From positions 13,764,001 through 13,828,000 of the forward strand of contig JBHGNT010000012.1 in assembly GCA_043228905.1 (NCBI GenBank): 64,000 nt of DNA, given 5' to 3'. Under the pieces are notes generated by a model. It saw nothing but the letters and a program-made list of their open reading frames with translations, searched no databases and was not told the DNA's origin. The stretch comes from Azolla caroliniana (taxonomy: Eukaryota; Plantae; Polypodiophyta). Of this stretch, positions 37,600 through 61,193 are shown in pieces; the stretch's first letter is position 1; the number at the start of each line of letters is the position of its first letter. Made by a program: the position numbers and the translations under genes.

Positions 37600-38020
37600 C
37601 TCCTCCTCATAAGATGTACCAATCAAAGCATTGTCTTCATCTAAAACCAAATGTTGTGACTCCAAATCATTTGTAGAAGACCTGGTTCGCCTTCAATCTG
37701 AGAAGCCTTGTAGACTTGGACTTTCTCTTTTATTATGTCTATTGTTGACTTCCTTAAATGTCCAACTTTTGTTAGTGTAAAGTCATACACAATGATATCC
37801 ACCTCTTGCATGTCAAGGGTCGATGTGTTCCGAATATTTCTTTTCCGCTTTCTATTTCCTCTTGATCTTGGGCATACCATCATCACCAATGTATACTTGC
37901 CTGTAAATGCATTCTTGCTTTTAGTGTTGTACCAATGCACCTTTGTAGATTTTATCTAATTTTGGTTTTCATGCATCACCACTTCCAATACATTACCAAT
38001 CCAAAATTGGTGCCCAAGGT
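37600..38020 (-). pseudogene. Fragment of an unknown, probably DNA-transposon-associated protein (C-terminal part)
   Basis: Translates as HQFWIGNVLEV...KVHWYNT...DIIVYDFTLTKVGHLRKSTIDIIKEK. It is protein-like but has stops, and I do not recognise the family with certainty. Confidence 0.45.
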
Positions 38021-38175: not shown

Positions 38176-38902
38176 TTGTGGTTAATTATAACGAATCCTA
38201 GCTAATTTTCCATGCCCTATATATAGCCACGCATATTCTTTTTCTCTTCACAAAGCGTGAGAGAACACCCGACTATACCGAGGTTTTGTCCTTGATTCAT
38301 TATTTGCCCTCTTTCAATAATGATAACTCGATACTTGGTATTGAGTTGGTGCACATATGGGCCCCAACTCGATACCACGGTTTTCGACCAATAAAACGAA
38401 GTCTAATAGGTACCAACCTATGATATTATTGACCAATAATAGTAGTTTTGGCACATAAATCAGTGCATTTTGACAATATTGTACACTTGCAATATTCTTT
38501 TGGGCGTAAAAAAAGTTTAGGTTTTATGTGTGAATTTTGCATTTTTTTAGCTAAATGGCTGGTTTTAATCATACAAATACCTTAATGAACACTTTCTAGA
38601 CCTCTTAGTGCCGATTTCCTTATTCTTTCCTTGTTATTATACTATTAGGTCTACGGATCCCAAGGATGAGCGCCCTGTGAAGAAAATTTTCCTAAAATAT
38701 CAAAGCTCCCCCATAGACACCACCAAAGTTCCCATTCTCACGTATAATCATGTTCACGTTCAGAAGTGGAAGGATCGCGCATTCCACTTTTAGATTCCTT
38801 TTATAACTATGCAAATCTATGATATATATAGAGACTTGTTACACCAGTATCACATGTTTGTCAACCTGTTTAGAATTTGTAGAATTATTAATAGTGAACA
38901 AG

Positions 38903-41900
38903 TTTTTTTTCAAAAAAATTCTACTTCCATTAGTTAAGAAAACGTACATAGGATAATATATAACTCATATGTTACAAGCCACTTTGCAATGGCTACAAGA
39001 AACCATCATGTATAAATGAAGCAACAAAGCCCCGTCACAGAATTACTCGACAGACTCCCCTCAACATGAGCCTCACACAACCCACATTCAACAAAGACAC
39101 CCTCCAATCTCTTCACAATTTAGCACCTACCTCTATGTTTGGTACCCTAGGAGGTAACAGCCACTGGTGTGGCTGATAAATCCACCTTGCATTGTCATCC
39201 ACCATCTATAACATCGGAGAACCTCTCCATTTAAGAAGGAAGCGGTATCTAGCTTCTTCACTTGCATCAGAGGGCCCTTGAAGGTTGTCAAACTTTCCTT
39301 GTAACGTAGAAATCAAATTAAACCAAATCATCACTAAACTCTCGGCCGCTGGGGTTCGCTTCTCGGTAAACGACTCCTTGCACCTAGATACCCACACTTG
39401 CCAAACAATAAAGTCAACCACTAAAAACCAAACATCTACGTACCGTTCCTATATGTAGAATGAATCTCCTTGAGCCGCAAGTTGAATTGTTCCATTCACC
39501 ACCTTTAAAGAAGGGCTATTGCCATTCCACCCATGAAACCATGCAAACCTATTCAGTAGCTAACCAAACAACTGCTGCACTTGATACCTGAACTTCAACC
39601 TTGCATCGAGCTGGAATTCTTAAGCTCCTCGTCCAAACTTATTGGGCTCGCGGGCAACTCCATAAACAATGGGAGATGTCCTCGAAACTCGCTCCACAGG
39701 CCTTGCAATTACTCATGCCACCCCTTTTCCCCAACCACTCTCCAGTTGGAATAGCCTGATGGGTGATTAGCCAAAAAAACACCTTCACCCTCTCGAGGAG
39801 GGATGAGTTCCATATCCTGCTCCTGGTTTTATCCACAAAGACTGAATCAACAACTGCATGGGTCCATTTGTTGACACACTTCTTGCAATGCAAGCATAAA
39901 TGTCTCCCCAAGCGAGTTGAGTAGTCAAAGAAACCACGTGATTTACCTTGTTCGTCCCTACACATATATTCTGCAAGATCCCATTCTAAACACTCGAGTG
40001 GCTTGCCTTCAACTACATACAAGATCCAATCCTCCTCAACGTCATCGACTGATGGATTCACCTTCCATTTCTTACCGTCTCGTGCCACAATTCTAATCGG
40101 GGACCAACGAGCACCTGCAACTACATATCCCAATCGGATGATCTTCCCATTCTTTCCTATACCCTTGACATTGATAACTTTTCCGGCATCACCACCACCA
40201 CATTGTCCGAACCACTCACCCTCTTCCCCATTACTAATAGGAATAGAGTAAACAACTTTATCAACTAGGTCAAACATCTTCCTACCATTTCTGAACTTTC
40301 TCGCATCTTCATATAATTTATCCCAATTACTAGGGGACAACTGCATCCAATCTTCCACTGATTGAATCCCAACACCATGCAATATAGCCCACGACATACC
40401 CTTGCTCTGGCCAAGCATCTTCCCCTCGTTCGACTTTAAGGTCTCGTTCCACAATAGGGGTTGGTGCATCCATTCAACATTAGTACTTGGACCTATACGG
40501 CTAAGATGCCCACGGAGCATATCCCACACCTTCACCACTGACATACATGTGCGATCAACCAACCGATTAGATCTCCTAAGCTTTAAGTCCATACAAAATA
40601 GCCATGATATATGTGGCTTCCAATGCCCACCAAGTCGTGGACTCCAAAGGATGCTCCTATTAAAAATCAATGTTTTCCATAACTCATTTCCGGGTAGCGA
40701 GCTCCTTACCAATACCTTACATAGCAATGATTGACTTTGTACTCTAGGGTCGATCAATCCTAAACCCCCCTTACTTTTGGGGAGAATCAACATAGACCAT
40801 GATACTTTAGCTACCGCATTGTCTTTCCTATTCCCAGCCCATAGAAAGCCCCTGATACATGCTTTAATAATACGAATAGCATGCCTGTCAAACATCCACA
40901 CTAAGACCGCATGCCACATAGTAGACAAGATCATATGGTTCGCTACTATGATCCTGCTAGCTAATGATAAATTCATCCCTGACCATATATGGATTTTGTT
41001 GCAAATTTTACTTTGAATTTGTTGCAACTATATTCTTTTGTCGATATCAACACCAATCCACATTCCCAAATATCTGGTGCCTTCCCCTTTTGCAATCCAT
41101 CTGAAATCAACATTCACTTTCCTTACTGGCTCGGCCTCCGAGCTAATCCAAAAACCCTTGGACTTATTCCAATTGATGGTAGCTCCCGATGCTTTGCAAA
41201 AGAGATCGATAGCAATTTGTGCCCTCCCCAGATTCCCTACATTACCTTGGAGGTATAACATCGTATCGTCCGCGAACTCCGAGTCAAGCAAGGACTGCCT
41301 TGTGTTAGGGATTGAAAGACCATGTAAATTTGCCGTCAGACTATTCAAAAAGGCAGACATTGCTTCAGTAATAAAGAGGAATAGAAAGGGGACGAGAGGA
41401 CAACCTTGCCTGATGGATCTAGTTAGAGAGATTCAAGCTCCTTTCTTCCCTGCAATCAACACCTTACTTGAGCCAATATTATATAAGGCTTGAGTAGCAC
41501 ACCTCCATTCCCATGGTAGCTCAATCACCTACATCACTTCTTCAAGGAAATACCATTGCACTCGATCATAGGCTCTCTCGAATTCAAGCATCAAACAAAG
41601 CTATGTTTTGCTTGGTCTCCCTTGCTGTCGCAATAGCCTCCCAAAACAATATCACATTGTCCACAATAGATCGATGCTGCATGAAACCAGTTTGATTGGT
41701 CTGGATGATATCTCCTAGAAAGGGTTTGACTCTCTGCACTAGTATGTTAGCAATTTTTTTATAAATGAGATTTAAAATGGTGATGGGCCTCCACTATCTA
41801 ATCTCGTGCGACACCTTCTCCGATTTAGGAATCAGGTATATCAGTCCTTCATTGAAGCTGCTCGGCATCCTTCTCATTCTCCACATTTCCCGGAATCCAG

Positions 41901-44900
41901 CTTCCAAACTAGGAAAAATATGCTCCCAAAATTCCACGAAGAAGGCTTTGGGAAGGCCGTTAACTCTAGGGCAAGCCCTGTTATGAATCCTATCTAGCCC
42001 CGCTACAATCTCTTCCTTCTCTATGGTCTTTGACAATAGTGATTTAGCTACCTCTCCAATCCTGGTCTTCAAGCATGCAACTACATGATGCATCAAGTTA
42101 ATCGGTGGGGCTTCTGTCAATGTTGGAGCTAAAAGGTCTCTGTAATACTTTTTTGCCATTTGCAAGATTTCATCTTTGTCAGTTGTCATCAAATCATCCT
42201 CTCGCTTAAGACTTAGAATAGGCTTTCCCTTCAGTTTTGGAGCCTTGGTAAGAAAAAACTCACTGTTAACTTTATCTCCCTTGACAGCCCACCATGTTGC
42301 CGACTTCTGAAGAGGAATTGCTCCCGTTGCTGCCTAGTCTCCTACAACACCCTTGTGGCTTCTAGTAGTCTATCTTTCGCCCAAGAATAGTGTGGGTCCA
42401 CTTGTGTAAGATTTTGAGCTGAGATGATTGCCTTCCTTAGGCATTGTAGCTGGGAATGACACCTTACCAACTCCTCTCTAGCCGCTTTCTAAAGAGCATG
42501 TGAAAAATTAATAATCTTATCCTCCAATACATGTAACGGGTCATCGGATAAGGGAGATGCTGACCAGATTTTAATCACTTCATCCTTAACCTTCTGGATA
42601 CCAAAACTCTTCGGAGGTATCCTCAAATTGCACTCACTCTTCTTCTTATGAATAGGATAGAGAGTCAAGGAAACTGGAAGGTGATCGGAGTAGGTAAAGC
42701 CAACTAGAATGGATGTGCAACCGCTCCAATCCTCAATTTTGGGGCTCATATAGATGCGGTCCAATCTAGAGTGACATCCTTCACTCTCCTTCCAACCAAA
42801 TCGTGAAAACCGCAAGGAATTCTCCTCAACCACCATACTAGAATACCAAGAATCTCTGATTCCAAGCATGGCAATTAAGAAACCCCATGCTCTAAGCTCC
42901 TCTCCCTGTAACAAGTTCGAGTGAGCCCCTAGACAATCATTAGTCCTCTCAGTCATGTTGAAATCTCCTGCTATTATCCAGTTGTCATAAGAGGAAATTT
43001 TGTTTGCCAGCTCGCTCCAAAAAGAGATCTCTCATTGCTACTATTTGGTGCATAGACATTCAGCACCCCAAATTTCTCATTCCTCCATTCCAGGTAGCAG
43101 AACACGATCCTTCCTTCTATCAGTATGCCATGATCCAGAATGGCGATATCTGGTGATTTTCTCGCCAAAATACAAACTCCAGCTCTCTTTTCTAGCACAT
43201 CGTGAGCTGGAGGCCACCATGTGTGCCAATCCCCTAGCAACGGGTCTTTGAAAAGTTCTGTCCTTTCTCGGCCAAGGTGATGCTCTTGTAAGAGAAAAAT
43301 ATCAATCTTCCTACATAAGTTAAAAACTTCAAATTCCTTCCTAAAAATTCACTTCTCAAGTAGATGATGGGACCCACCAAGTCCTTGCACATTCCAAGAG
43401 AAAAGTCTCATTGACTTGGATTCAAAAGAAGAGCCAAGGGGGATTCACCCTCGCTCGACAAATATGTCGTCATCATACTCCATATGTTTTCCCACGCCAT
43501 TCTTATTTCCCATTTTTTATCAGTGGGTAATTCAGCACAATGGGAGTGGAACTGACCAAGATTTAGCATAAGATCTTGCACCCTTCATATGCAAACCAAG
43601 GGAACATTTGGACCAAGTTCAAGAATCTCCCCGTGTATCATGGAGCTCTTCCATTGTGCATGTAACCCCGTGGCCTCGTTTTCAGATATAAGGTATCACA
43701 TACACACTGCTACTCTGATACAAAACGTCTTCAGGAGGATTCTTCTCCCCTTCCATCTTCCAAATCCGGCTCCAATTGGAAGGAGCAACCAATCTCCGGT
43801 CTACTAGAGTCCTTATTGATGAGGACCATGTGTGCTCTATTCCAACCGTGAACTCTTTCCTTGGGAGTACCAATGTTCACTGCAACCTTGGGTACCTCCA
43901 TACCTTGCATCTTCTAGTCTTTCATCATAACAAAGTCAAATCCCACAATCGAGGGATTTCCGGCCTCAATCCGGGCAAGCATTTTCTGCACTTCACTATT
44001 ACCCATGTCCACATGACTCTCCTTGTCCTTCCCTTTCCTAATCCACACCTTAACCGTTCTTAGGTCTGATGAAAATATGTTGCCTTGGCTTTCAGAGGGC
44101 TCTACAAGTGTTTCGAGGGTCTCGACTCTTGGAAGCAAATCAATTGGAGTCGTCAAAATTATCTCACCCTCTTGGGTTTCCTCTTCCCTTTGTGACAAGA
44201 TATCAAATCTATTCGAACTGGAACCGTCACTTGTAGGAGGACGCTTATGATTATGAATGTTAGACCTGGCCACTTTCCTTGGCGTTACCCATCCTTCTTC
44301 CCCAATGACTTGCTTCCCAACATGAGCGAGGATCCTTTGCCCTCCCATCACTAACATTGGGTTATCGAGCATCTTGGTGCCCTGATTTCCCTTGCCTTCT
44401 CTTTTCTTCCAATACAAAGGGCAATGTTTGGCCATATGGCCCATTTCCTTACATGCAAAACACTGGCCCGACAAGCCTTCATAGCCAACCTTCACCACCC
44501 TTAGGCCAAAAACCTCCGTGCGGACTCTAATCTCTGTTGGCAGTTCTTTTATGTCTCTAACCAACACCTTAAGCTTGGGGATTTCTGCAACCTTATCTGC
44601 AAATGAGGGTTTGTCTATACATACCATCCCAATATTGTGTGCCAACTTTGGGATCAAATGATAGAGTTGGATGGGTAGGTCTGGGAAGCATACGGTAATG
44701 ACCACTAGAGTGCCCTCTTTTTTATGCTCCTCCATTGGATTAAAGTCTGGACTCCATTCCAAAATCATGGCTTTGCCATACTTGAGCATAATCCATTTGT
44801 CGTCCAGAATTTCTTTCACATTATGGCCTTCTTCTAAGATCACATGGTGATAACTACAACCCATTCACAAAATGTTCTGGATAGATGGCATTTTACCCAA

Positions 44901-45788
44901 AAGGGCTACTTGCAACATGTCTCTTAACAACCCTTTACTAGGGCGCCCTCCTAATAGCGGACATATGAATGACGAACACTTCAACCTACCCACTTCTTCA
45001 ACCAACCTTTGATTCTCGGCCAGAGAAAGATAGAGGTCAATTCCTTTTCTTTCGTCAATGTTCTCCTCCATCGGCGTCTCTTGGACTAGATCGAAGTCAA
45101 TAAACTCCTTTTCCATCATGCTACTGTCAATGAGTTCCTTGGTATTCATTTCGGCAAGTGCCGTGTTCAGCTCCCCCCCTATTGGCTTCTGGTCCTTTGG
45201 GCCCAAATGCATACAAGTATCTAATATTTCAGCTCTAGGAGGGTTTGGATCCATACCTGTTCCAATTATGTCCACTGGAGGAAGCTTGACCATCACCATC
45301 TTCAAAAGATTGTTGCAGCTCTCTGTGCTTTAGCCTTGCATCATTAATAGCCGCCTTCCAATCGTGTTGCCGCCCGTTGCCGAAGACTTGTCCTTGCCGA
45401 CTACCTTCATTGCCAATCCCGGTTTGGGTCGCGCTATTCGACGAGAGGTTTGCTGACGCAGAGGCAGAGAGGGCCATCGAGGATGATGGAAGGAAGCTTT
45501 TCCTTTCGACAGAGCCCTCGTTTGATTTTCCTCTATCGCCTCCTCATTCCGCTGCCCCATCCCTCTTCTCTGTCACTCCCTCGTTCAGGCATGACAACAC
45601 CACAAAGCAGAACAATCGTTGATTAGAACAAGACAACCACTGACGAGCGGCTGAAACTCCCTCCTGTGATAGCCGCTGCACGCGCTCTCATCCCGTTGAC
45701 TGTGGCGCACTGCTAGCCAATGCACGCGGTCCTCGCCATGCTCCTCAGGTCTCCTCGACGATTGTTCCACTGTCAAACTGTTTTTACC
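38903..45788 (-). mobile_element. Near full-length degenerate L1-clade LINE
   Basis: Poly(T) tail at 38903 and an imperfect TSD AATAGTGAACAAG (38890) / AATATTGATCAAG (45789). ORF1 has the knuckle CFACKEMGHMAKHC. ORF2 starts MRLFSWNVQG at 43411 and has APE motifs, RT FADD and zf-RVT CKAC...HCLWSC. Confidence 0.88.
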
Positions 45789-46801
45789 AATATTGATCAA
45801 GTTTCAAAGTAAAAACTATATTATGTAATATGCAAAGTTGGTATCAACGTTGAGAAAATCATGATCTCCAGATATAAAAGGTAGTTAAATTACAGACAAT
45901 GAACATTTGAAGCAACATTTGATATCCAGGTTTAAACATCGTGTGGAGGTTCAGGGACAAGAAATGGAAGTCATATGCTATAGTAACCGTTAATGATTAT
46001 GTATTTTGCACTCTAATACTTAGTGAATGTTGCCCGATATAATACCTTACCCTAATGGTAGTAAGAAAGAAGCAAATCAAACATATGGACACTATGGGCA
46101 TACATTCCATGTTAAATATCATCTAGAGTTTCCCCGATACACACTCATGAAAGAGGACACCCATACACACGTAGCATATAATGGATACACCTGAACACTC
46201 ATTATGGTCACACCCAAAAGTAAGGTGGGTACGAAAGGTAGAACAAACTCGATGATCATTTAAAGTGAAGCTTAGATTAAAACAATTATAACATGTAGCG
46301 TAGTAAAGCTTAGTAATGTTATAACGTCGATTAAAACATGTACCTCAAGTTTTAATGTCGATAGCAACAACAAAAATGTAACAATATATTAAACAATTAA
46401 AGAAACAATATAAACATTGGTAGACATATTTAAAGAAACAATATAAACACGAAATTAAACTTAGATTACGGAGAATAAAACTTTGATTACAATATTTTTG
46501 ATAAAATACAAAATTCTTTACATGGCTATAAGGTTATCTTCATCATTCTCTTCGTCTTCCTTTTAAGAACTGTTCTCAAAATTCTATGCATCGGCATCCA
46601 CTCTAGATAGGCTAGCTATAGTGGGGTCCTCTAGAAGCTCATCATCCAGTTCTATAAGTTCCCCAGGTTCACTAGTCAAGGGAGGAATAGGCTTATGGGA
46701 GGCAACTTGAAACCGTTCCATATCTGCGATATGCTTTGCCCCTTGTAAAGAATCAAGAGATGGATTCTTGTGAAGCGGAAGAGATGTGAGTTGTGTGTGT
46801 G

Positions 46802-46840
<39 letters not shown>

Positions 46841-46910
46841 ACGCAAGGTTAAGTGTATTAGCAAAGGAGAAAGACTCAACCTTATACAAGGTGGGAGGAG
46901 GGTGCTTTAT

Positions 46911-47182
46911 TGACGGGAACTGGTCGTTCCTTATGCGCAACGCTCGGCCACAACCGGGCTTAGAATGATACATAGAAAACGGGAAATAAAACGCGACACA
47001 AAGAAGAGACGAGGTACACAGGAGGTTTACGTGGAAAACCCCAAACTAGGGGAAAAAACCACGGCAGCCCACAGGCTACAAACTATCACTATGATGGAAT
47101 GTACAACCATGAGTTCACTGAGGCACCAACCTCGTGCTCACAGATCTTCGCCACAGGTGGCGGTTACAACAGAGGCAACGAC

Positions 47183-47221
<39 letters not shown>

Positions 47222-50200
47222 CAGTTACACACACTCTCTATTCTTGCACCAACAAGAATGACAACAACAACAACAGTAACAACAGTAACAATAGTAACAA
47301 CAGTAACAATAGTAACAACAGTAACAATAGTAACAACAGTAACAATAGTAACAACAGTAACAACAGTTACAACAGTTACAACAGTTACAACAGTTACAAC
47401 AGTTCCTAAAAGTTTGCCCTAAGTCATATTTATACTAATATGACTTTTTTGGCTATTTACAAATGTAGCCGCGATGGACTATAAGAAAACATATTTACTA
47501 ATATGTCTCTTCATCCGGTTCTCCGTAGCTGGGTACTCCTCATCCGGTCTTCACCAGGTCTGCATCATCCAGCTCTCCGTAGCCGGGTACTCCTCATCCG
47601 GTTCATACTGGGTCTGCACCATCCGGCCCTCTGTAGCCGGGTACTCCTCATCCGGTCTTCACCGGGTCTGCACCATCCGGCCCTCCGTAGCCGGGTACTC
47701 CTCATCCGGTCTTCATCGGGTCTGCATCATCCGGTTCTCCGTAGCCGGGTACTCCTCATCCGGTCTCGGCCTCGGCCTATCGGCCTCAGCCGAGTTTGTT
47801 CATCGGCACTGTTCTTCTCCCTTCCCATCCGGAGGGACCTGTCTCCCAACATTTATGTAGTCCTTCACTCCGGCATGGGGTGTCTTACCAGTCCGATTCT
47901 CTTCCGGCATGCATCCAGCTTGTCGGGTATCAACACTTTGGTTAGCATATCTGACCCGTTCTCGACCGTGTGGATCTTCATCAGCGCGAACTCCTGGTCA
48001 TCTACTCTTTCCCGGATCCAGTGATATCTTCGCTGGATATGCTTCGTCCGAGAATGGTAGGCCGCATTCTTAGCAAGGTGGATGGCACTTTGACTGTCGC
48101 AATAGAGTCATATTCCTCTTGCCGGATACCGAGCTCTCCGATGAAGTCCTTCATCCATAATATTTCCTTGCCGGCTTCCACAGCCGCCATGTACTCCGCC
48201 TCTGTGGTTGACAATGCAACAGTCTTCGCAGCCTCGACTGCCACGAAACGACTCCCCCTGCATATGTCATTACATACCCGGAAGTAGACCGGCTGGTATC
48301 CACATCAGCCGACATGTCTGAATCGGTGAAACCGTCAAGTTGAGGTTTTCCGGAGCCGAATCGGAGACACATATTTGAAGTGCCCTTCAAATATCGGAGT
48401 ATCCATTTGACCGCGTTCTAGTGCTCCTTGTCGGGATTGCTCATAAACCGGCTCACCACTCCGACTGCGTATCCTATGTCCGGTTGGGTACAAACCATTG
48501 CGTACATCAAGCTCTCGACGGCAGAGGCATATGGAATCTTCATCATATCCGCCTTCTCTGCTTTCTTCTTCGGGTTTTGCTTACCGGATAGCTTGCAGTT
48601 TGCCGGAAGTGTCGATCTGACCGGTTTTGCTTCTGACATGTTGAACCGGTGAAGCACCTTTGTCACGTACTTCTCCTGTGACAGCCATAATTGCTTCTTT
48701 GACCAGTCCCGAATGATATGCATCCCCAACATCTGTCTTGCCGGACCCAAGTCTTTCATTGAGAAGGTCCGGTTGAGAGCCTTCTTCAGCATCCGTATTT
48801 TGACTTGGTCACGTTCGACGATGAACATGTCATCCACGTACAGAAGGAGTAACAGGCAGTGATCGGCCTGCGTCTTGTGGTACCCTTGATAGGTCATGAA
48901 GGAGTCGAACTTCCGGTACCATTGACGGGGAGCCTGCTTCAGTCCGTACAAGCTCTTCTTCAACCGGCATACCAAGTGCTCCTTCCCTTTCTCCACGAAT
49001 CCTTCTGGTTGCTGCATGTAGATCTCCTCTTCGAGGTCGCCGTGAAGGAATGCCGTCTTCACGTCCAGCTGCTCTACCTCGAGGTCCATGCTTGCTGCTA
49101 TACTCAGCACCGTCCAGATGGAGGTCATCTTTACTACTGGGGCAAATATCTCGTCGAAGTCCGCGCCCTTCTTCTGCTAGAACCCCTTCACCATGATCCT
49201 GGCTTTGTATCTCGGGGGGTTTCCGGCATCTCCCGGTTTCAACTTGTACACCCACTTGTTTCGGAGTGCCCGCTTTCCTTTCGGCAGCTCCACCAATTCG
49301 TACGTATGGTTCTCATGCAGGGAATCCATCTCGTCCTGCATGGCACTTAACCATTTTCGGCTGTGGGTGTCATCCTCCGCTTCTTTGAAGCTTTCCGGCT
49401 CCCCCTCATCGGTTAGCAGAACATGCTCTGCATCCGGAAATCTCCGGGGGGCCCTTCTCTCTCTGAGAGGATATCTCCGTCTTTGGGCTTCGGTAGCCGG
49501 CTCCTCCATTTGCTCTTCATCCTAATCCGATTCGGGGTCTTGGCCGGTTCCGGTCTCAGCTTCCTCTACTTCTTCTTCTGCCGGTTCGGTATGCTCACCG
49601 TAACCGGCTGGTTCCTGAGTGTTAACCGGTCTCTTGCCGGTTGGGTCTGCTCATTGTAGAGTCTATCCTTACCGATCGACTCGGAGTTCATTATCTTCTT
49701 CTCCGACTCCCAGTCGGCGAGCGTCTTGTCCTCCATGAAGATAATATCTCGACTCCGGAATACCTTCTTGTCGACCAGGTCCCACACTCAGTAGCCGAAC
49801 TCATCGTCACCGTAACCGAGGAATATGCATGGCCGGGTCTTTGGATCTAACTTTCCTCTCCGGTCATTAGCTACATGCATGTACACGAGACACCCGAACA
49901 CCTTTAGATGCCGGTAGGATACTTCCTTACCGGTCCACACTCTCTGTGGCGTGTCTCCGTCCAAGGGTACTGAGGGTGATCTATTTATCACATATGTCGC
50001 CGTCGACAGTGCCTCAGCCCAAAACTTCTTGGGTAGTTTTGCATGCGCTAGCATACTCCGAACCCTCTCCATTATGGTCCGGTTCATCCTCTCGGCCTGT
50101 CCATTTAGTTCCGGCGTCTTCGGCACGGTAAATTCAAGCCGGATCCCCTTCGAGCGGTAGTACTCCTCGAACTGCCCCCGGTATTCTCCTCCGTTGTTTG

Positions 50201-52762
50201 CTCGTACCGCCTTCAGCTTCCGGCCGGTTTCTCTTTCCACTCTTGCGTGGAGCTCTTTGAAGACGGATAACACTTGATCCTTCGTCTTCAACGGTGTGGC
50301 CCACAGCTTCCGGCTGTGGTCATCTATGAACGTCACGAAGTACTGCGCTCCGGCATGTGACTTCGTGTCTACTGGACACACATCCGTATGCACCAACTCC
50401 AGTGGTGTATTACGTCTCATCGGTGGCTTTGGTCGGAAGGAGGTTCGGTTCTGCTTACCGGCCAAACAATCAGTGCACTTCTCTAAGTGCACGTTCTTCA
50501 CTGGAATGAGGTTGTCGTTTGCAAGCCTCTTCATCCCCTTCTCGCTCATATGACACAGCCTCTTGTGCCACAGCTCACCGGCAGTGTTGGATGCCACGTT
50601 CACTTCTTCCGGACATAACTGGGTATTCATCAGGTACAATGTGTTTACCTTCCGGGCCCGAGCCACAATTAGGCTCCCTCTACTGAACTTCATGACATCG
50701 TTCCGGATGCTACCCGTGTAGCCTTCATCATCTAGCCGACCGGCTGATATCAGGTTCAGTCGAACCTCCGGAACGTGTCGGACATCCTTCAGCAGCAACT
50801 TGCATCCGGTTGGTGTTGACAGCCACACGTCTCCTATGCCGACAATTCGGCATGTACCTTCATTCCCCATCCGGACACAGCCGTGGTCACCGGCTGAGTA
50901 GGATGAGAAGCATTTCCGGTCCGGGGTAAGGTGGAACGATGCTCCGGAGTCTGCCACCCAGGTCATCTCGTCGCCAGCAAGGTTTATCTCACTCTCCTCG
51001 GTGATGAGCATCAACTCTTCTTCACTTGCCGCGATTGCCATCGTTCCCTTCCGGTCCGGGCCCCTTCGGTCTTTACCGTTCCGGTCCGGGGTCCGCTTCG
51101 AATCGGTACCGTCGGTTTCCTTGTCTTTTCGGAAATGCCGACAGTTCTTTTGGAAGTGTCACGGCTTGCCGCAATAGAAGCAAGTAGGGCTCCCCCTTGA
51201 CTTTGACCGTGTTCCCGACTTCTCCCGGTTCTGGGGACTACGGTTTCTATGTCTTCCGCGTTCTGATTCGGTAAGGAGCGCTTTGGAGTCGGAGCTCGTA
51301 TCTTTATCTTTTCGACGCGCCTCCTCATCTAACAAGCTCGACTTTACTCTTGCTAGGGATAACCGTTTTCCTTCCGGCCCGGCGTTGCCCAAAGTGACAA
51401 CCAACGTCTCCCAGCTATCCGGGAGGGAACCGAGCAGAAGTAGCGCTAGTACCTCATCGGCGAGAGGCACTTCCAATGAAGTTGCCTGGTGGATCAGCCC
51501 CTGGAAGGCATTCATGTGCTCCGCCATGGTGGAGCCATCTTGGTACCGGAGTCTTACTAGCTTCCGGAATACCGAAACCTGATTAACAACATTTTTGTTT
51601 TGAAACATTATGCCGATCTTCTCCCAGAGCTCATGAGCCTTGCTCTCTTCATTGAAGTTGTTGTACAGGCTCATGTCGATGAAGCACTGTATGTACGCCG
51701 TTGTCTTCATGTGCATCACCTCCCATATCGCGGCGTCGATTTTGTCCGGTCTCTTGTCCCCGTACTGAACCGGCAGCCAAAGATCTTTTACCACGAGCAT
51801 ATCCCTCATCTTCGACTTCCACATTGAATAGTTGGAGCCGGTGAGCTTGAACATGCCACCAAACGATTTGTCCATTTTCTGTGTCGTTTTGCTCTGATAC
51901 CACTTGACGGGAACTGGTCGTTCCTTATGCGCAATGCTCGGCCACAACCGGGCTTAGAATGATACACAGAAAACGGGAAATAAAACGCGACACAAAGAAG
52001 AGACGAGGTACATAGGAGGTTTACGTGGAAAACCCCAAACTAGGGGAAAAAACCACGGCAACCCACAGGCTACAAACTATCACTATGATGGAATGTACAA
52101 CCATGAGTTCACTGAGGCACCAACCTCGTGCTCACAGATCTTCGCCACAGGCGGCAATTACAACAGAGGCAACGACCTCTTTCTCTCTCTCTCTCTCTCT
52201 GTGTGTACAATTACACACACTCTCTATTCTTGCACCAACAGGAATGACAACAACAACAGTAACAATAGTAACAACAGTAACAACAGTAACAACAGTTACA
52301 ACAGTTACAACAGTTCCTAAAAGTTTGCCCTAAGTCATATTTATACTAATATGACTTTTTCGGCTATTTACAAATGTAGCTGCGATGGACTATCAGAAAA
52401 CATATTTACTAATATGTCTCTTCATCCGGTTCTCCGTAGCCGGGTACTCCTGATCCGGTCTTCACCGGGTCTGCATCATCCGGTTCTCCGTAGCCGGGTA
52501 CTCCTCATCCGGTTCATACCGGGTCTGCACCACCCAGCCGTCTGTAGCCGGGTACTCCTCATCCGGTCTTCACCGGGTCTGCACCATCCGGCCCTCCGTA
52601 GCCGGGTACTCCTCATTCGGTCTTCACCGGGTCTGCATCATCCGGCTCTCCGTAGCCGGGTACTCCTCATCCGGTCTCGGCCTCGGCCTATCGGCCTCAG
52701 CCGAGTTTATTCATCGGCACTGTTCTTCTCCCTTCCCATCCGGAGGGGCATCCCTCCCAAAA
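46911..52762 (-). mobile_element. Ty1/Copia element A, nested in the LTR of element B
   Basis: LTRs at 46911-47851 and 51905-52762, TSD TTTAT, tRNA-iMet PBS at 51891-51902. gag-pol spans ~47880-51875 with stops and frameshifts. Confidence 0.95.
47260..47765. repeat. Tandem arrays inside the Copia A LTR: 9-bp (ACAACAGTA)n and a ~51-bp CCGG-rich unit
   Basis: Read directly. Also present at ~52246-52675 with fewer 9-mers. Confidence 0.9.
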
Positions 52763-55700
52763 TTTATGTAGTCACCCTCTCTCTTCATTAACTACAAGCC
52801 TCATGGATCATGGGGAATGTGAAAGCTCATAAGTTATGTGTCATAGAATATGATTCTATGACTCATACTAAATGCTAGAATACAAAGTGGTGACATAATG
52901 GTTACTCTTGACCGTTGGAGTGTCTCTTCACTCTCAAGGTGAGTTCACACACTAGACCAAGTTGAGCTTGATTCTCAACACGCCCCCTCAAGCTCAAGTC
53001 GGGTTGGTTTCAGACGGTATCCGAAATCCGTTTCAATTCACGTTCGGGAGTCCGCGGCGACTCACGTCGAATCGCTTTATGCGGAGTTGCGGAATCTGTG
53101 CTCCAGCTTGTGTTGTGCGTAGTTACGAAGTCTGTGCTTCGGCTTGTGTCTTTCTTGGCGGCTTTGCGCGGTAGATCGGCTCTTCACTACTACGTTGCAT
53201 GGTTGCAGAATCTACGCGTTATTGCGTAGTGTCTTCAATACTCCCCTTCAAGCTTGGCAGGTCAGGGATCATCAATCCGAGATTGGTCATGAATTGCCAT
53301 AGCTTGTCGGCTCCTAAGGCTTTAGTGAAGATGTCAGCCGTTTGAAGATTGGTGCTTATGTGTTGTAGGTCGACATCGCCAGCCAGAACGCGCTCTCGGA
53401 TGAAGTGATAGTGCACTTCGATGTGCTTTGTCCGCGCGTGGAACACCGGGTTCCGAGCCAGATAGATACTGCTCATGTTGTCGCAGTAAAGGGAAGTCGG
53501 ATCCTTGATGGGTACGCCCAGATCCTTCAAAATCCTCTTGAGCCATACAGATTCACACGCAGCTACGGCTGCGCCCTTGTATTCCGCCTCCGTACTCGAA
53601 AGAGCGACGGTGGGCTGCTTCTTGCTACTTCAGGATATTGCTCTGCTGCCGAGGGAGAAAACAAATCCGGAGGTTGATCTTCTACCAGCTTTGTAGCCGG
53701 CCCAATCGGCGTCTGTGTACCCCTCGAGTCGTATTGGCATCGCGGTCTTGTAGAGGATGCCATAATCCATTGTGCCGCTCACGTATCATAGAACTCGCTT
53801 AGCGCAATCCAAGTGAGTATCACGCGGTGTTTGCATGAATTGGCTAAGGAGACCGACCGGATAACTGAGATCAGGTCGTGTGATCATGAGGTAGATGAGA
53901 CTCCCGATGAGTTGCCGATACTGAGTCGGCTCACACGCTATGGTGCCGGAGTTCGCATCTAGTTTGAGATTACGATCGAGCGGGGTTGCCACGGATTTGC
54001 ACTCAGCCATCCCGAACTTGTATAACAAGTTGAGGATGTAGTGCCGTTGAGAGATCATGATTCCGGCCGAAGTCCGAATTACCTCGATGCCGAGGAAGTA
54101 GTGGAGCTCCTTCATGTCCGTCATCTCGAACTTGTCGGAAAGGAGGGATTTGACTTTATTGATTTCGACGAGATGCTCACCTCCAATGACTAGGTCATCC
54201 ACATATAAAATGATGACAATCGGACTTGTGGAATCGCTTCGTATGTAGAGGGAGTTGTCCGATTTTGACATACGGAAGCCGATTTGATGAAGATATTTCG
54301 TTATCTTCGAATGCCAAGCACGCGGTGCTTGCTTGAGGCCGTAGAGTGGCTTCTTGAGTCGGCAAATAGCCTTTGGATGGGTGCTCGAGTTGAAGCCGGG
54401 TGGTTGTATCATGTAAACCTCCTCTTCTAATTCGCCTTGTAGAAAGGCGTTCTTGACGTCCATTTGATGGAGGTGCCACCCTTTCACCGCGGCAAGCGCA
54501 ATTACGGTCCGCATTGTTGTCATCTTTGCCACTGGGGCAAAGGTCTCCTCGTAGTCAACTCCATGCGTTTGGGTGTAGCCTTTCGCTACGAGTCGCGCTT
54601 TGTAGTGGTTGACGGAACCGTCGGAGTTGTACTTCACTTTGTAGATCCATTTGCATCCGATCGCCTTTTTGTGCGGTGAGGTGGGAACGAGATCGCACGT
54701 CTCGTTCTTCCGGAGTGCCTGCATCTCCTCGTTCATTGCTTCAATCCATCGCGGGTCCTTCGCAGCTTCGGAAAAGGTTTCCGGCTCCCGTACTGTTGCT
54801 ACCTTCATCATAACGGCATAATGGTACGCCATATACTCGTTGTAGCCGAATTGGCTTACAGGGTTCTTTTCACGAGTGGATCGGCGGAGCTTTTCATTTG
54901 CAAAGATAAGGGCTTTCTTAGCTCCGATTGGTACATCGAAGCCGCCGAACTCACTATCAAGTGATTCATCGTCGTCGAAGCGATCGTCTTCGTATTCCGC
55001 CATTTTCGCCTTGCCTTTGTCCATCTTCGGGCTAGGCCGTGATGTGCTTTGATCGCTCAAAGGCTCTTGTGGTCCGCTCAATCGGGTCGTGATCGGACTT
55101 TCTTCGAACATGCGCGTAAGGTGATCTTCGTCTTCTATCTCTTGTTCGGTGGATTCCGGGTCGAGCGGGGTCGGAGTCGAAGTTGTCTCTGGTGCGTACC
55201 AAGATGCAGACTCGTCAAAGACGACATCTCGACTTACCCGAGATTTTCGAGTTGAGGGGTTGTAGCACTTGTACCCCTTTTGCTCCAGTGAGTATCCTAC
55301 GAGGATACATTTCTCCGACTTCGGGTCGAGCTTTTGATGCTTCTCGTCAGGGATGTGCACATACGCAATGGAGCCGAATATCCGAACATGTGATAGGTTC
55401 GGCTTCTTTCCGAAGAATCTTTCGTGCGGAGTGACCTCGTGCATGCCGGATGTTGTGCACCGGTTCATTAGGTAGATGACCGTATTTGCCGCTTCGGCCC
55501 AATATGACTTGGGCATATGCTTCTCGTTCATCATGGCCTGCACTACTTCGAGGATGTGCCGATTTTTGCGCTCGGCTACTCCGTTTTGTGCGGAGTGTGT
55601 CGGCAAGTGAATTCTCGCCGAATTCCTTCCTTTCGGAGATACGTCGTGAAATCGTCCGAGAAGTACTCCTTGCCACCATCCGATCGAAGGCATCGTACAT

Positions 55701-58700
55701 GTCGGCCCGTGGCTTTCTCGACTTCCTTCTTGAAATTTTGGAAGTGTCCGAACACTTCGCTCTTTTGCTGCATCGGGTAGATCCAAGTGTGCCTAGAAAA
55801 GTCGTCGATGAAGAGCACGTAATATCGGCATCCGCCGAATGTCGCCGTTTGAGCCGGACCCCATACATCGGAATGAATTACGTCGAGTACACCTTTGCTC
55901 ACATTCCGCTCCTTCGGAAATGGGTGTCGGTGTTGCTTGCTGAATTGGCACGCTTCGCATACACCTTCAATCTCCTTCTCTTTGAATGTCGGGAGTCCGA
56001 TGGCGACTCCTTTTGATTTCATTGCTTTGAGTTTGTTGAGATTGATGTGGCCGATTCGCTTATGCCATAGCTCTATGTCGGATTCGGCTTTCGTGCTTTT
56101 CGCGAACATGGCGGATTTCATCTCGTGCGAATCGAGAATGAACATCCGACCCTCTCTTCTACCGCGTGTGATGATTTGGCCTTCTTTTTCGATGAGACAC
56201 CCTTCTTGGTCGAATCGTACTTGCATCCCTTGCTCAACCATTTGGCCGACCGAGACCAAATTCTTTGTGATGGTGGGTACATGCAAGACGTTTTTAATGT
56301 ATGTTTGCTTACCTCTTTCGCCGAACGGAACATTGCCGATGTGCCGAATCGGGTGCGTAGTGTCATCTCCGGTTTCGACATAACCGGGTCGCTTCGGCTC
56401 TCGAAGTTCGAGAAACCATTCTTTGTGGGATGTCATATGGTTCGAGGCACCGGAATCGACAAACCATACGTCTTCCGGACGGGAGGCACTAGTTGAGGTA
56501 GCGGCCGACATAGAGTTTGCTCTATGTTTCATCATGAACATTCCGCCACGGTCGGAATTGTATGCATACATTCTGCCACGATCCTCGTAGTCGGAGTTGT
56601 GCCCATGCATTCCGCTATACTCTTTGTAGTCGGAATTGTGCGTGTAATTCGTGAGTTGTCGGCTTGTGGAAACCGATTCATGCATCTTCTTTCGGCACTC
56701 TTCTTCGTGGTGGCCGAACTTTCCGCAATATCCGCATTCGGTTGCGTTTTGACGGCTCGGGCCGGAGTGGAAGCTCCCCCTTCTTGCGAAGGTTCCTCAT
56801 TGGCCTCCGTTTTGCGGCCGAAATTCGGAGTTGTTGTCGTAGGTCGGACCTTGTCCACCTTGTCCTTGGCCGAATCGGCCTCTCGCTTGTCCGCGTCCTC
56901 TTCCTCCATTAGAGTGCCTGTAGAGCATGTGGCCTTCCGACTCATTGCTCCTTGTACGCACGTGGTTTTCTTCGACCAATAGCATTGATTGGAGCTCAAA
57001 GAAGGAGGGAGATTTCTCCCGTGCTAGAACGGCGATTCGCATCGCGCCGAACCGTGGTGCGAGGCCGCCGAGGCATATTTGCACCATCTCATCATCATCT
57101 ATACTTACGCTTATTGAGCCGAGTGAGTCGCAAAGCTCCTTGATCTTCAAGGTGTATGTTGTGATGGACATGTCCCTTTGTTGAATGTTGTTCAACTCTT
57201 GGTGGAGTTGAAGCTTCCTCGCGGTCGTATTGGCGGCGAAAATCTTTCGTAGATTTTCCCACGCTTCCTTCGGCGTCTTGGCTTCTCGAATGTAACCGAG
57301 CATGTGGTCGTGAACACATGTCGCCAAACAATACATCACGCGGCTTGCAACTTGCTCCCATGTCGCGTATTCGGAAGCCGCTTCGGCGGGTTGGTCTTCA
57401 TGCGCTCCTTTGATGTAGCTCCAATAGCCTTGTCCGACAAGGTATTGGTGCATCTTGTACTCCAAAGATGCGAAGTTTTTTCGATCGAACTTCTCGGTAG
57501 GGAGAGCGCTCCCCATTTGAGTATTCATTATGTCGATTCTTCTTCTTCTTCTTCTCTCTTCGAATGTGAGCTATGTAGCGAAGCTACAATAGCGATGAGC
57601 CGGTTCTTGGTCGTCGGCGTGGAGCACAACACACGATCACGATGAGGCGAATGGGCTAGATCGAGTTACCAAATTGCTCTGATACCATGTAAAGAATCAA
57701 GAGATGGATTCTTGTGAAGTGGAAAAGATGTGAGTTGTGTGTGTGTGTAAGAGAGAGAGAGAGAGACACAGAGTATACGCAAGGTTAAGTGTATTAGCAA
57801 AGGAGAAAGAGTCAACCTTATACAAGGTGGGAGGAGGGTGCTTTATGTAGTCACCCTCTCTCTTCATTAACTATAAGCCTCATGGATCATGGGGAATGTG
57901 AAAGCTCATAAGTTATGTGTCATAGAATATGATTCTATGACTCATACTAAATGCTAGAATACAAAGTGGTGACATAATGGTGACTCTTGACCGTTGGAGT
58001 GTCTCTTCACTCTCAAGGCGAGTTCACACACTAGACCAATATGAGCTTGATTCTCAACACCCCTACCTCCTCGTCTTGATCTGGGAAATCCCATAAGGCT
58101 TTAATCCACATGTTAATGAAATATACTTGCTCTCGTCCTTCTCCAATGCAACAATATTTCGAAACAATTTCAAGGCGCACGCAAATGTCCTATCTATCAC
58201 CAAAATAATAAGATCATAGCTTCAATTAGACAACTGATAAGTTTATACTTTTGTTGAGCAAAGTCTAAAAACATACTTGTTCCAGAAAACAAATCTAAAA
58301 TCCAATCTCCTTCATTAGAGAATATTTCGATAAGGCGCATCATTAGTCATTGAGGCTTCTGCAAGGATTGAATAGGCCACGTTCAGTCGTCGTGACATGT
58401 CTCAATTTCCGCATAACTGCAAGGCACACTAGTGGATTTGAACCTCCAACCTTGTTCAAATGCTCCTTAATCCTTGGCTTCTTGATTGCATCATAATAAC
58501 CAACAGATGTGTATTTAGTAGCATTAACAAACCGAAAGGTAGGTCCTCTATTAACATTGTTTTTCATCCTATAAATGACAAAAGGAAAGAGTCATGTTGT
58601 AGTTACACAAAGTGACAAGACTTGAAAGGAAACCAAAATCAAATTAGTCTTTGTATAAGCCTTACCAAGTAAGGTTCTCTACATCATGACAACGAGATCT

Positions 58701-61193
58701 CAATGCTTGAGCCACAGAATATCGTTGGTCAATACTACGAAAGACCACTATTCTCCACAAGCTAGTTGTGGTCAACTTTGCAAAATCCTTCACCGTTTTC
58801 TCCAACTGTTGGAACCTAAATGGTTCATCATCATAAGAAGATCCAGCCATCTAGAAACCGTATGGAATATCTGTAGTGAGTAACTTGTACTCCTTCAACA
58901 ACTTCTAGATCATCTCCCCCTCATCTCCGCCACATCACCACGATACACATTATAATACAGTTCTCGAGTGATATCTTTTTTGTAGCTGAACTTCTTGAAA
59001 GTTCCGACATTGTCCACATTGAATGCCTTCACTAAGAGCCGGTCCTTTTCTTTTCGTGCTCTTTCAAGATGAGCAAGAAAGGAAGTTGGAAAATCATGTA
59101 TGTCTTTGACTTCTCCAGGCTTCTTGCTACGACATGGTTTCTATGTGAAACAACAACAGAAGTAACTCATACTTAGTCTTCAAATATGTAATAAACTAGA
59201 ATGGAAAATTTCAAATATGTAATACTAACCCAATCATTAAAAAGCAATAAAATATTTCAGTAGCACCTTCTATGAAGATCTAATCGGATACCCTTCAGTC
59301 ACTTGTTCCCATGTTAAGCAACCAAGTTGCTTCATCATCATGTTGGGAATTTGGTCCCTCCGTATGGGATCTGGATGAGAACCAGACGAGCTAGATCAGA
59401 CGAGACGAAGGAAGGAACCGGATCGGATGGATTTGGAAGGAGTCCGGCCGGATCGGGTATAAATCAACAAATAGGAACATATTAGTAAATATGTTCAGAC
59501 ATGACCATTGAGGTCATAGTTGTTAATAGCCCCAAAGTTATATAAGTATAAATATAACTAGGGCAATACTGATTTGGATGTAGATCATAATTAGAGTTGT
59601 TATCGTTGTATAGAGATAGATACATAGAGGCAGGGAGAGAGAGCGTGAGAGAAACAAAAAGTATTCTCTGTTGTAACGGCTGGTTGGCAAAGACATAGAG
59701 CTCGAGGTCATTGCCTCTGATTCTGTCATTGTACCCTTCCTCTCATAGTGATAGTTGGAGTATGTGGGCTCTTGTGGTTTTTCCTGATTAGGGTTTTCCA
59801 CGTAAACATTCAGTGTCCTCTGTGTTGTTTGTGTAAGTGCATTGCCATTTTCTGTTTATTTCTTCCATCATGAGTTTGAGACTCGATTGTGGCCGAGCGT
59901 TATTCTCCACAATCTGGTATCAGAGCATGGAAGATCCATTCACCAGCATGTTCAAACTCACCGGCTCCAACTACCTAGTGTGGAAGTTGAAGATGAGGGA
60001 CATGCTAGTGGTTAAAGATCTCTGGCGGTAGTTTGGAAACAGAAGACCGAACAAGTTCGATGCCACGACTTGGGAAGTATGCACATGAAAACAATGGCAT
60101 ACATTCGATGCTTCATCGACATGAGCCTGTACAATAACTTTAATGAAGAGAACAAGGCCAATGAGCTTTGGGAGAATATCAACACGATGTTGGAGAACAA
60201 GAAAGCCGTAAATCGGGTCTCGGTATTTCGGAAGATAGTGAGGCTCCGATATCAAGACGACGCCATCATGGCAAAGCATATGAATGCCATCCAAGGGCTG
60301 ATAAACCAAACTACCTCTCTCGAAGTACCATTAGCCGACGAGGTACTAACACTGTTATTGCTCGAATCCCTCCCGCATAGCTGGGAGACATTGGTTGTGA
60401 CTCTGGGCAATGTCGAAACAGAGGGAAAGAACTTATCCTTGGCGAGAGTTAAGTCAAGTTTGCTAAACGAAGAAGCTCGCCGGAAGGATCGTGAGTTCGG
60501 AACAGATCCAAAGGCCTTGGTTATAGAAGACGACCATAACCGGGGAAGAGGCCAGAATCGGAGTCCCCAAAACTGGGACAAATCGGGGACGAGGTCGAAG
60601 TCAAGGGGGAGGCGCACTTGCTTTTATTGCGGAAAGCCAGGACACTTCCAGAAGAATTGCCGACACTTTCAGAAAGCCAAAGGGGGAGCCGACATTTCGG
60701 AACCAAAGAAGGTTTCGGATAGGAGAGGAACGTCGGCAATCATAAGTGAAGAAGAAGTACTGCTCATCACCAAGGAGAGTGAGCTCCATCTTGTCATTGA
60801 CGAAACGACATGGGTAGTCGACTCCGGAGCGTCGTTCCATCTGACCCCCGACCGGAATTGCTTCTCATCCTACAAAGCCGGAGATCATGGTTGTGGCTGG
60901 ATGGGAAATGAAGGTGCATGCCGAATTATTGGCATAGGAGACGTGTGGTTGACGACGTCAACCGGGTGCAAGTTGCTACTGAAAGATGTATGACACGTTC
61001 CGGAGGTTCGGTTGAACCTGATATCAGCTGGTTGGCTAGATGATGAAGGATACACGGGTAGCTTTTAGAATGGAGTCATGAAGTTTTGCAAAGGATGCCT
61101 GATCGTGGCCCGAGCCCGGAAGATAAATATGTTGTACCTGATGCATTCTCGGATATGCCAGGAAGAAGTGCACGTGGCATCCGACACTATTGG

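Follow-up and report, generated by a model that had tools for sequence, protein, structure and literature searches.

What is a DNA amino-methyltransferase (MTase) gene of bacterial type, interrupted by introns and decayed, doing in the genome of a fern, when DNA methylation in land plants is thought to be entirely 5-methylcytosine (5mC), except for the N4-methylcytosine (4mC) of Marchantia sperm? The question is raised by a stretch of 64,000 nucleotides of Azolla caroliniana (contig JBHGNT010000012.1, positions 13,764,001 to 13,828,000), the whole of which we call the window, and in which such a gene had been predicted, at 58060-59340, from the letters alone. We find that this region is very likely the 3' half of a passenger gene belonging to a family of cut-and-paste DNA transposons of ferns, in the intact copies of which the encoded protein, an MTase preceded by a predicted ParB-like DNA-binding half, would mark DNA. 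The identity and the anatomy of the gene we hold with high confidence; the mechanism of self-marking set out below, for which the sequences are our guide, is tentative, and we give it somewhat less than an even chance. The original prediction lacked the ParB-like N-terminal half of about 500 amino acids (aa), the transposon context, a continuation of the gene at 46743-46518 and the precedent published for algae.

The Gene Remnant in the Window

Inspection of the reading frames on the minus strand of 58060-59340 reveals four exon remnants with three GT-AG introns between them, and all of the peptides on which the prediction had been built are found there: ...YNVYRGDVAEM at 58913-59140, KEYKLLTTDIPYGF at 58854-58904, MAGSS...ENLTW at 58665-58850, MKNN...FNPC at 58346-58567, LMMRLIEIFSNEGDWILDLFSGT at 58200-58346 and ACALKLFRNIVALEKD at 58066-58221. 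The predicted extent holds as far as this remnant goes, and falls short at the 3' side, as the last exon continues at 46743-46518, beyond a copia retrotransposon. The parts of the gene, in the order of transcription, are listed here (a stroke marks a splice junction).

59230-59340, minus strand: remnant of the small exon linking the ParB-like half to the MTase half, MMMKQLGCLTWEQVTEGYPIRSS*KVLLKYFIAF, matching ...EVMMKRLGCFSWTEVQEDYPTTSSYKALSEYFILFRDY/KP... of the Ceratopteris model P0049
59141-59229, minus strand: intron 1, 89 nt, with GT at 59229-59228 and AG at 59142-59141; splice site supported by the P0049 model
58666-59140, minus strand: exon with catalytic motif IV (TDIPYGF), carrying a frameshifting insertion cluster and TAG stops; 71% nucleotide identity to the intact exon of the fern contig L007
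58569-58665, minus strand: intron 2, 97 nt, GT...AG, splitting a Trp codon (tg/g); supported by the spliced models P0028 and P0019
58277-58568, minus strand: exon with NPY(Q)KP and the S-adenosylmethionine (AdoMet) motif I (DLFSGT), with a 1-nt deletion and CGA>TGA; matched by PF01555 and in phmmer searches
58194-58276, minus strand: intron 3, 83 nt, GT...AG; DLFSGTG/TTLACSL of P0028 spans the same point
58060-58193, minus strand: last exon, first part (..ACALKLFRNIVALEKDE..PDQDEEVG), with a 1-nt deletion, ending at AGGGG (58060-58064)
46518-46743, minus strand: last exon, remainder (AKHIADMERFQ...NLIAM*), encoding the acidic C-terminal tail as far as the stop codon and interrupted by two premature stops; found by tblastn with P0028 (E 5.7e-10)

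The GT and the AG of all three introns stand at the very positions predicted, and the Trp codon is indeed rebuilt across the second of them. Introns 2 and 3 are borne out by the spliced fern models P0028 and P0019 (...ECLTW/VKTNVN... and ...SGTG/TTLAC...), and intron 1, along with the small first exon (MMMKQLGCLTWEQ...), by the Ceratopteris model P0049 (...FILFRDY/KPKKSK...). The motif order of the beta class is kept as well, running from TDIPYGF through NPC-KP and DLFSGT to R..V.LEKD (58060-58193). In searches that used stop-free pieces of the window or natural proteins, the exons being left unjoined, a piece of 49 aa (58200-58346, minus strand) matched the Pfam family N6_N4_Mtase (PF01555) with an E of 1.2e-5 and 25.9 bits (gathering cut-off, 26.7 bits), and exon 3 alone (58346-58567, minus strand) retrieved by phmmer, from 1.84 billion representative proteins, 22 relatives, all of them short exon-sized fragments (best E 6e-25). 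At the DNA level the remnant is 69.5% identical to the intact copy L007 over 1300 bp, and the detached part of the last exon (46518-46743) is 75% identical to L007 4493-4717. No second MTase copy was found in the window, nor any match to the ParB half anywhere in it.

Intact Relatives in Ferns and Ginkgo

Intact relatives, retaining ADIPYGF, NPYQKP and DLFSGTGTT, are found in ferns and Ginkgo, and the suggestion that the DNA came from a fern-like genome agrees with their sources: Ceratopteris, Adiantum, fern-like contigs of the ENA, and Ginkgo. Among them is the Ceratopteris richardii protein KAH6557349 (P0019), a search from which gave KP509_15G027200 (P0028, 268 aa). At the corresponding Ceratopteris locus (L002) an open exon precedes the annotated start (...YYNVFCSDV...LLIADIPYGFRMLGS...), and therefore motif IV is real and the gene model is truncated at its N terminus. 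The fern-like ENA contigs (L003-L016) carry intact copies in which an open reading frame (ORF) of 509-579 aa is followed by three exon-sized ORFs, and in Ceratopteris the P0049 model splices the large ORF to the next exon (...EVMMKRLGCFSWTEVQEDYPTTSSYKALSEYFILFRDY/KPKKSK...). Adiantum nelumboides and Ginkgo also have homologues of the large ORF, those of Ginkgo being four gene models, of which several contain PF01555 as well. The intact gene consists of five exons and encodes about 800-900 aa, with an N-terminal part of some 500 aa ahead of the MTase.

Existing annotations capture this gene in fragments. The Ceratopteris models KP509_15G027200, KP509_1Z120000 and KP509_1Z236600 (loci L002 on chromosome 15, L001 and L018) are partial transposon gene models; L002 sits within the span of a gene model for an NB-ARC/LRR protein of 1484 aa, and the similarity of L001 to L002 extends for more than 10 kb. 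In Adiantum nelumboides (L017, 10001-31360) the ParB-MTase model spans 21 kb, about 18 kb of it in one intron, and belongs to a subfamily with EAPY or DAPY at motif IV. Outside the plants, a profile search of 185,579 prokaryotic genomes returned no close relative, and in IMG/VR the only matches were two phage MTases that have no ParB domain, with about 40% identity in a stretch of about 45 aa, so that no donor lineage can be named.

The Methyltransferase Half

The assignment to the beta class of amino-MTases, made originally from motifs, is substantiated by profiles. Natural relatives score above the PF01555 threshold (57.3 bits, E 2.8e-15, for P0028; 65.7 bits, E 7.6e-18, for the Ginkgo protein P0071; 37.4 bits for the L007 exon), the best piece of the window falling just under it. 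When a profile of the MTase half was compared to solved structures, CcrM was the best match (E 2.5e-7, 33 bits), aligned from motif IV to motif I, followed by M.MboIIA, DpnA and M.RsrI. In these alignments DPPY corresponds to DIPY, HPTQKP to NPYQKP and DPFxGxGTT to DLFSGTGTT; the fern proteins differ in their low overall similarity to the CcrM group, in an unrelated target-recognition region and in the isoleucine that stands for the first proline of motif IV.

Conservation within the family is pronounced. ADIPYGF (in at least 17 fern copies) and NPYQKP...DLFSGTG show no change among the fern copies retrieved, even at 55% identity. Compared to the general form of motif IV, (D/N/S)PP(Y/F/W/H), the aspartate, the second proline and the tyrosine are invariant in these copies, the first proline being replaced by isoleucine; Ginkgo has DIPH and a divergent pair from Adiantum EAPY or DAPY. 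Motif I is DLFSGTGTT in the fern proteins and D(L/P)FSGSGTT in those of Ginkgo, and in the window DLFSGT/ ends at the splice site. Because motif IV begins with D, and because the closest solved enzymes are all N6-adenine MTases, N6-methyladenine (6mA) is the more likely product, in preference to 4mC, of a putative active enzyme.

The N-Terminal Half

The part of the protein that is missing from the window was modeled from the large ORF of L007 (P0035, L007 1592-3118, plus strand), with a mean predicted local distance difference test score (pLDDT) of 72 for the AlphaFold model. In Foldseek comparisons the model matches ParB, Noc and KorB proteins (E 5.6e-6, probability 1.0) and sulfiredoxin (Srx; TM score 0.59-0.66), and structural alignment by VIA-align finds PadC (Z 8.9), the N-terminal domain of pNOB8 ParB (Z 8.7 over 209 residues, within residues 201-509) and the DNA-binding domain of KorB (Z 4.9 over residues 339-509). 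On this model, the N-terminal half is predicted to be a ParB/Srx fold followed by a helical DNA-binding domain of the KorB/ParB helix-turn-helix type. A conserved box, VIGGSHSAEARRQL, is ParB/Srx-like but departs from the canonical CTP-binding motif, and no GERRxR arginine patch was found. Residues 30-146 of the same model form a separate beta-rich domain (pLDDT about 87-92), with weak matches to the SANTA domain of M18BP1 (Z 5.7) and to PH-like domains (Z about 4), which may be a chromatin- or protein-binding module. By language-model features, the nearest non-plant clusters are phage fusions of ParB_N with N6_N4_Mtase (0.88-0.89, a lead only).

The Transposon Unit

Upstream of the ParB-MTase gene, on the opposite strand, lies an ORF of 600-700 aa matching DUF7869 (E 2e-51), along with a further C-terminal ORF. 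This divergent pair is present at six loci in at least three ferns: L001 and L002 in Ceratopteris, L017 and L019 in Adiantum, and the fern contigs L020 and L021. The atlas neighbors of DUF7869 are multi-copy eukaryotic proteins, and in one of the clusters 11% of members carry DDE_Tnp_ISAZ013.

Between the two genes, in L001, L007, L017, L020 and L021, there are arrays of palindromes with units of about 31-51 bp. The array of L001 (6966-7656) has about 20 copies of a 31-bp unit, AAGTCGATGCC-W-GGCATCGACTT; that of L007 (921-1111) is made of 51-bp units, CAACTCGATAC-AAT-GTATCGAGTTG; the unit is GAATTCGATAC-GTG-GTATCGAATTC in L020 (3933-4708) and TTGGATTC..GAATCCAA in L017 (8063-8261), and the array of L021 lies at 3757-3942. 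The sequence of the arms and the period (31 or 51 bp) vary by subfamily, and a TCGAT core is kept in three of the arrays. It looks as if the palindromic sites and the DNA-binding domain co-evolved.

The pair is enclosed by terminal inverted repeats (TIRs). In L001 the left end, AACAGCGAGTCGTAACAAA, and the right end, AACACTGAGTCACAACAAA, match at 16 of 21 positions and are flanked by ATAC on both sides, and L020 has a TIR of 21 nt (95%). The Adiantum ends, which begin with AACAGC(A/G)AG, were recognized by boundary inspection, blast searches of L017 and L019 for TIRs having given nothing by themselves. Target-site duplications (TSDs) of 4 bp can be read in three informative copies only, being perfect in L001 (ATAC) and L019 (AGTA) and matching at three of four positions in L017 (CTAA/TTAA). 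A unit bounded by TIRs, with 4-bp target duplications, is therefore most probably a cut-and-paste DNA transposon. In copies with both ends placed, the intact element measures about 8.5-9 kb and is ordered as follows: TIR, DUF7869 gene, palindrome array, five-exon gene on the other strand, TIR. In L021 an inverted repeat of 28 nt (89%; 1747-1774 and 8155-8182) brackets the two-gene unit; it is unlike the AACA... termini and is without a TSD.

The surmise that this MTase lineage was mobile is thus upheld: the gene and a transposase-like gene reside together between the TIRs of an element, and near-identical copies have different flanks. The contigs L007, L008, L009, L013, L015 and L016 are 95-99% identical up to a common terminus, AACACGTTCGCGTTCAGAAGTGGAAGGATCG (AACACGTTCGCG...), and then continue into at least five unrelated flanks. 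Between such young copies the ParB ORF has a ratio of non-synonymous to synonymous substitution rates of 0.08-0.13, and non-synonymous changes are almost absent from the MTase exons.

Comparison with Known Systems

The closest precedent comes from the brown alga Ectocarpus, in which the DNA transposon Sola1-1_Ec32, bounded by TIRs, carries a gene for a ParB-like protein with a 4mC/6mA MTase opposite the transposase (PMC12477816, Genome Biol 2025), and its authors propose that the protein binds and marks its own element (PMC12477816). The fern elements are alike in that, between their TIRs, a ParB-MTase gene and a transposase-like gene lie on opposite strands; they differ in size (about 9 kb versus 21.5 kb), in the length of the protein (about 800-900 aa versus 1104 aa) and in their host, a land plant. 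The comparison is made on the published description. Sola1 elements make target duplications of 4 bp, with which those read in the fern copies would agree.

Red algae present a second precedent. Their Plavaka, Zisupton and Mutator elements encode PAG2 (PF01555 with SET) and PAG3 (ParB-like with a 2-oxoglutarate (2OG) oxygenase) (10.1101/2025.02.11.637652; Curr Biol 2025), and tandem inverted-repeat arrays adjoin the ParB-bearing gene, for which self-binding and self-modification were proposed (10.1101/2025.02.11.637652). As in the ferns, a ParB-like domain and a methylase of PF01555 are carried by passengers of DNA transposons, next to repeat arrays; in red algae, however, these are two proteins, with SET or 2OG partners, in other transposon superfamilies, whereas the fern protein is a single fusion. 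ParB-MTase transposon passengers are already published for brown, red and green algae; none was described for land plants (ferns, Ginkgo) in the full-text literature searched.

Other likenesses are more distant. Phage and bacterial fusions of ParB_N with N6_N4_Mtase have the same order, a ParB N-domain followed by a beta-class amino-MTase, but they are of about 400-480 aa, without introns and without the PH/SANTA-like N-terminal domain. The MpDN4MT1 of Marchantia (TSPPY) and the N4CMT of bdelloid rotifers (SPPY) are also PF01555-type amino-MTases, of bacterial origin, with introns in eukaryotic genomes; unlike the transposon gene, they are host genes for N4-cytosine MTases, so that we treat this comparison as an analogy only, and no specific sequence relationship to them was seen. 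The bdelloid enzyme is fused to a chromodomain and not to ParB, and its paper states that it has no eukaryotic homologues. A preprint on "DAM" in retrotransposons deals with a different, alpha-class Dam family in retroelements (10.64898/2026.05.21.726589).

Proposed Mechanism and Alternative Explanations

How would such an element use its passenger? We propose that the ParB-like half of intact copies would bind the palindrome array of the element itself, that docking at the palindromes would bring the fused MTase to the DNA of the element, and that the MTase would write 6mA (the likelier mark) or 4mC on it. The mark might then control transcription of the element from its divergent promoter, or its transposition, or it might shield the element from silencing by the host. 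One possible purpose would be the coupling of transposition to replication; Dam couples the transposition of IS10 to replication. A further step would be that the young intact fern copies, which are 95-99% identical and evolve under purifying selection, still work today and deposit 6mA or 4mC on themselves by docking at the palindromes of their subfamily; this we hold to be less likely than not.

A number of observations speak against the remnant being half of a transposon passenger gene with a marking enzyme. Motif IV, being DIPY, is noncanonical compared to DPPY, and it becomes DIPH in Ginkgo and EAPY or DAPY in Adiantum paralogues; MTase activity is therefore not assured. The model of the MTase domain (Ginkgo P0071, residues 330-670, from an alignment of 14 rows) had a pLDDT of 36 and was excluded from the fold searches. 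The N-terminal ORF of 509 aa has no match in Pfam at E values up to 1, ParB_N (PF02195) included, and no sequence match in the PDB. As to the transposon, the 10 kb upstream of the gene at the Ceratopteris locus L018 contain no DUF7869 gene, DDE catalytic residues were not located in the DUF7869 transposase-like protein, and L020, a short-read contig that may be an assembly chimera, is without a TSD. In the window, the link between the MTase remnant and a TIR at 38744, described below, depends on colinear matches that are short and in one case weak (E 2e-4).

Of the alternatives, the one that survives best, while still unlikely, accepts the transposon passenger and holds its MTase half to be a pseudo-enzyme, the protein acting solely in regulation or partition of the element, by binding DNA in the manner of ParB and KorB. 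The isoleucine in place of the first proline of motif IV would fit with this, as would the DIPH of Ginkgo and the EAPY of Adiantum paralogues, the latter reminiscent of the inactive EPPL motif of METTL14. However, the D, P and Y of motif IV, along with NPYQKP and FSGTG(T), remain invariant down to 55% identity, and the MTase exons are nearly unchanged non-synonymously; given this invariance and selection, a catalytic, or at least an AdoMet-binding, constraint is hard to avoid. Less probable again is a decayed paralogue of a domesticated, horizontally acquired amino-MTase of the host, with no transposon involved, which would serve the plant much as DN4MT1 serves Marchantia sperm and N4CMT the bdelloids; a domesticated copy may nonetheless exist somewhere. 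At six loci in at least three ferns TIRs enclose the gene along with a transposase-like gene, near-identical copies occur in different flanks, there are dozens of paralogous clusters with many dead copies, and motif IV reads DIPY versus the TSPPY of DN4MT1, all of which is difficult to reconcile with a host gene, even if protein conservation between ferns and Ginkgo is deep (37-41% identity over about 500 aa), purifying selection is strong, ferns and Ginkgo have swimming sperm, as does Marchantia, and the Ceratopteris L018 copy has no transposase gene nearby. Finally, a chance or low-complexity resemblance, or contamination by bacterial or phage DNA, with no plant MTase gene at all, can practically be dismissed: although the window pieces stay just below the Pfam threshold (25.9 versus 26.7 bits) and four of five have no Pfam match, homology to intact spliced fern genes extends exon by exon (to E 6e-25), the positions of the GT-AG introns are conserved, the gene harbors plant copia insertions with their target duplications, and no close prokaryotic or viral relative was found in the databases searched.

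If the remnant is what we take it to be, a fossil of a transposon passenger, its family deserves attention for several reasons. A transposon with its own DNA-marking enzyme, docking domain and docking sites would be a compact, self-targeting epigenetic module, of a kind reported recently and only in algae; the fern elements and the Ginkgo gene models would extend it to land plants, where young copies are under selection. Were self-marking to prove true, land plants would carry a transposon-encoded, self-targeted mark other than 5mC that has been overlooked in fern and Ginkgo methylomes. Models annotated in Ceratopteris, Adiantum and Ginkgo as "hypothetical protein" or "DNA methylase N-4/N-6 domain protein" are in fact parts of transposon genes, which matters for annotation. 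The intact copies of the L007 type and their palindrome arrays provide concrete genes and candidate binding sites, the window copy being a fossil only.

Decay of the Window Copy and Its Surroundings

The window copy is dead, as had been noted; its frame is shifted at about three lesions and broken by at least seven stop codons. Compared to L007, the frameshifts are a +2/+6 insertion cluster before KEYKLL, a -1 at NPY(Q)KP and a -1 in the last exon. Four stops can be aligned to L007 (CGG>TAG, CGA>TGA, CAA>TAG and CAA>TAA), and the C-to-T origin predicted for them is found in four of four, always at codon position 1, a pattern expected of methylated, silenced DNA. In addition, the copy has been taken apart by insertions; these, and the transposon ends in the window, are the following.

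59341-60993, plus strand: start of a second copia element, a long terminal repeat (LTR) followed by gag, cutting the 5' half of the gene; recognized by LTR similarity and Retrotran_gag_2 at 60070-60990
46744-58059, minus strand: tandem copia array (LTR-internal-LTR-internal-LTR) inside the last exon; recognized by LTR repeats and Pfam matches to copia gag, INT and RT
38906-45846, minus strand: insertion of about 6.9 kb with retroelement-like ORFs (zf-RVT match) in the 3' untranslated part of the element; boundaries approximate
38744-38905, unstranded: right TIR (38744-38781) and subterminal region of the MTase-pseudogene copy; 73% identity to the right end of L007
37183-38022, unstranded: left end belonging to another copy of this transposon family, with its TIR, AACACGTTCACGTTCACAAGTGGAAGGATCG, at 37183; matches the left end of L020 along 906 bp with 65% identity (E 6.5e-80)

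On the 5' side, the LTR of the second copia starts (TGTTGGGAAT, 59341-59350) directly at the limit of the remnant, 59340, and the ParB half, the palindrome array and the transposase would be located beyond this copia, outside the window. On the 3' side, the last exon is split into 58060-58193 and 46518-46743 because the tandem copia of 46744-58059 inserted into it, leaving a perfect 5-bp TSD (AGGGG at 46739-46743 and 58060-58064). The three LTRs of this array are in the same orientation, the third (57685-58059) being without its middle, and the full LTRs contain 54-bp tandem repeats (47457-47820 and 52368-52731); the array looks like the product of unequal recombination between two elements. 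Farther downstream, matches to L007 resume in colinear fashion, L007 5336-5390 corresponding to 45900-45847 and L007 5418-5574 to 38905-38749, and therefore the 6.9-kb insertion lies between the MTase remnant and its right TIR.

A motif of 33 bp occurs in direct copies at 37183-37218 and 38744-38781, which are the TIRs of two adjacent copies of the ParB-MTase transposon. Next to the TIR at 37183, what is left of the C-terminal part of a transposase-like gene can be recognized, in decayed form, at 37591-38006 on the minus strand (60% identity, E 1.5e-31, by tblastn with the L001 ORF), and one of the two transposon copies may have inserted into the other. We also considered whether this motif (at 37186 and 38749) might be the polypurine tract and LTR junction of a copia element, and rejected the idea, since the two inverted termini of L020 carry the same sequence and since six contigs diverge exactly there.

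Elsewhere in the window there are other mobile elements and a gene cluster. A non-LTR retrotransposon (ORFs with RVT_1 and Exo_endo_phos) and a gypsy-type pol fragment (RNase H and integrase) are found at 21068-24149 and 27463-28950, both on the minus strand. Long intron-less pentatricopeptide repeat (PPR) genes are clustered at 5886-8486 (minus), 11182-13806 (plus), 16375-18087 (plus) and 33143-36175 (minus), of which three are P-type ORFs (571-875 aa) whose PPR matches are very strong and one is an ORF of 1010 aa.

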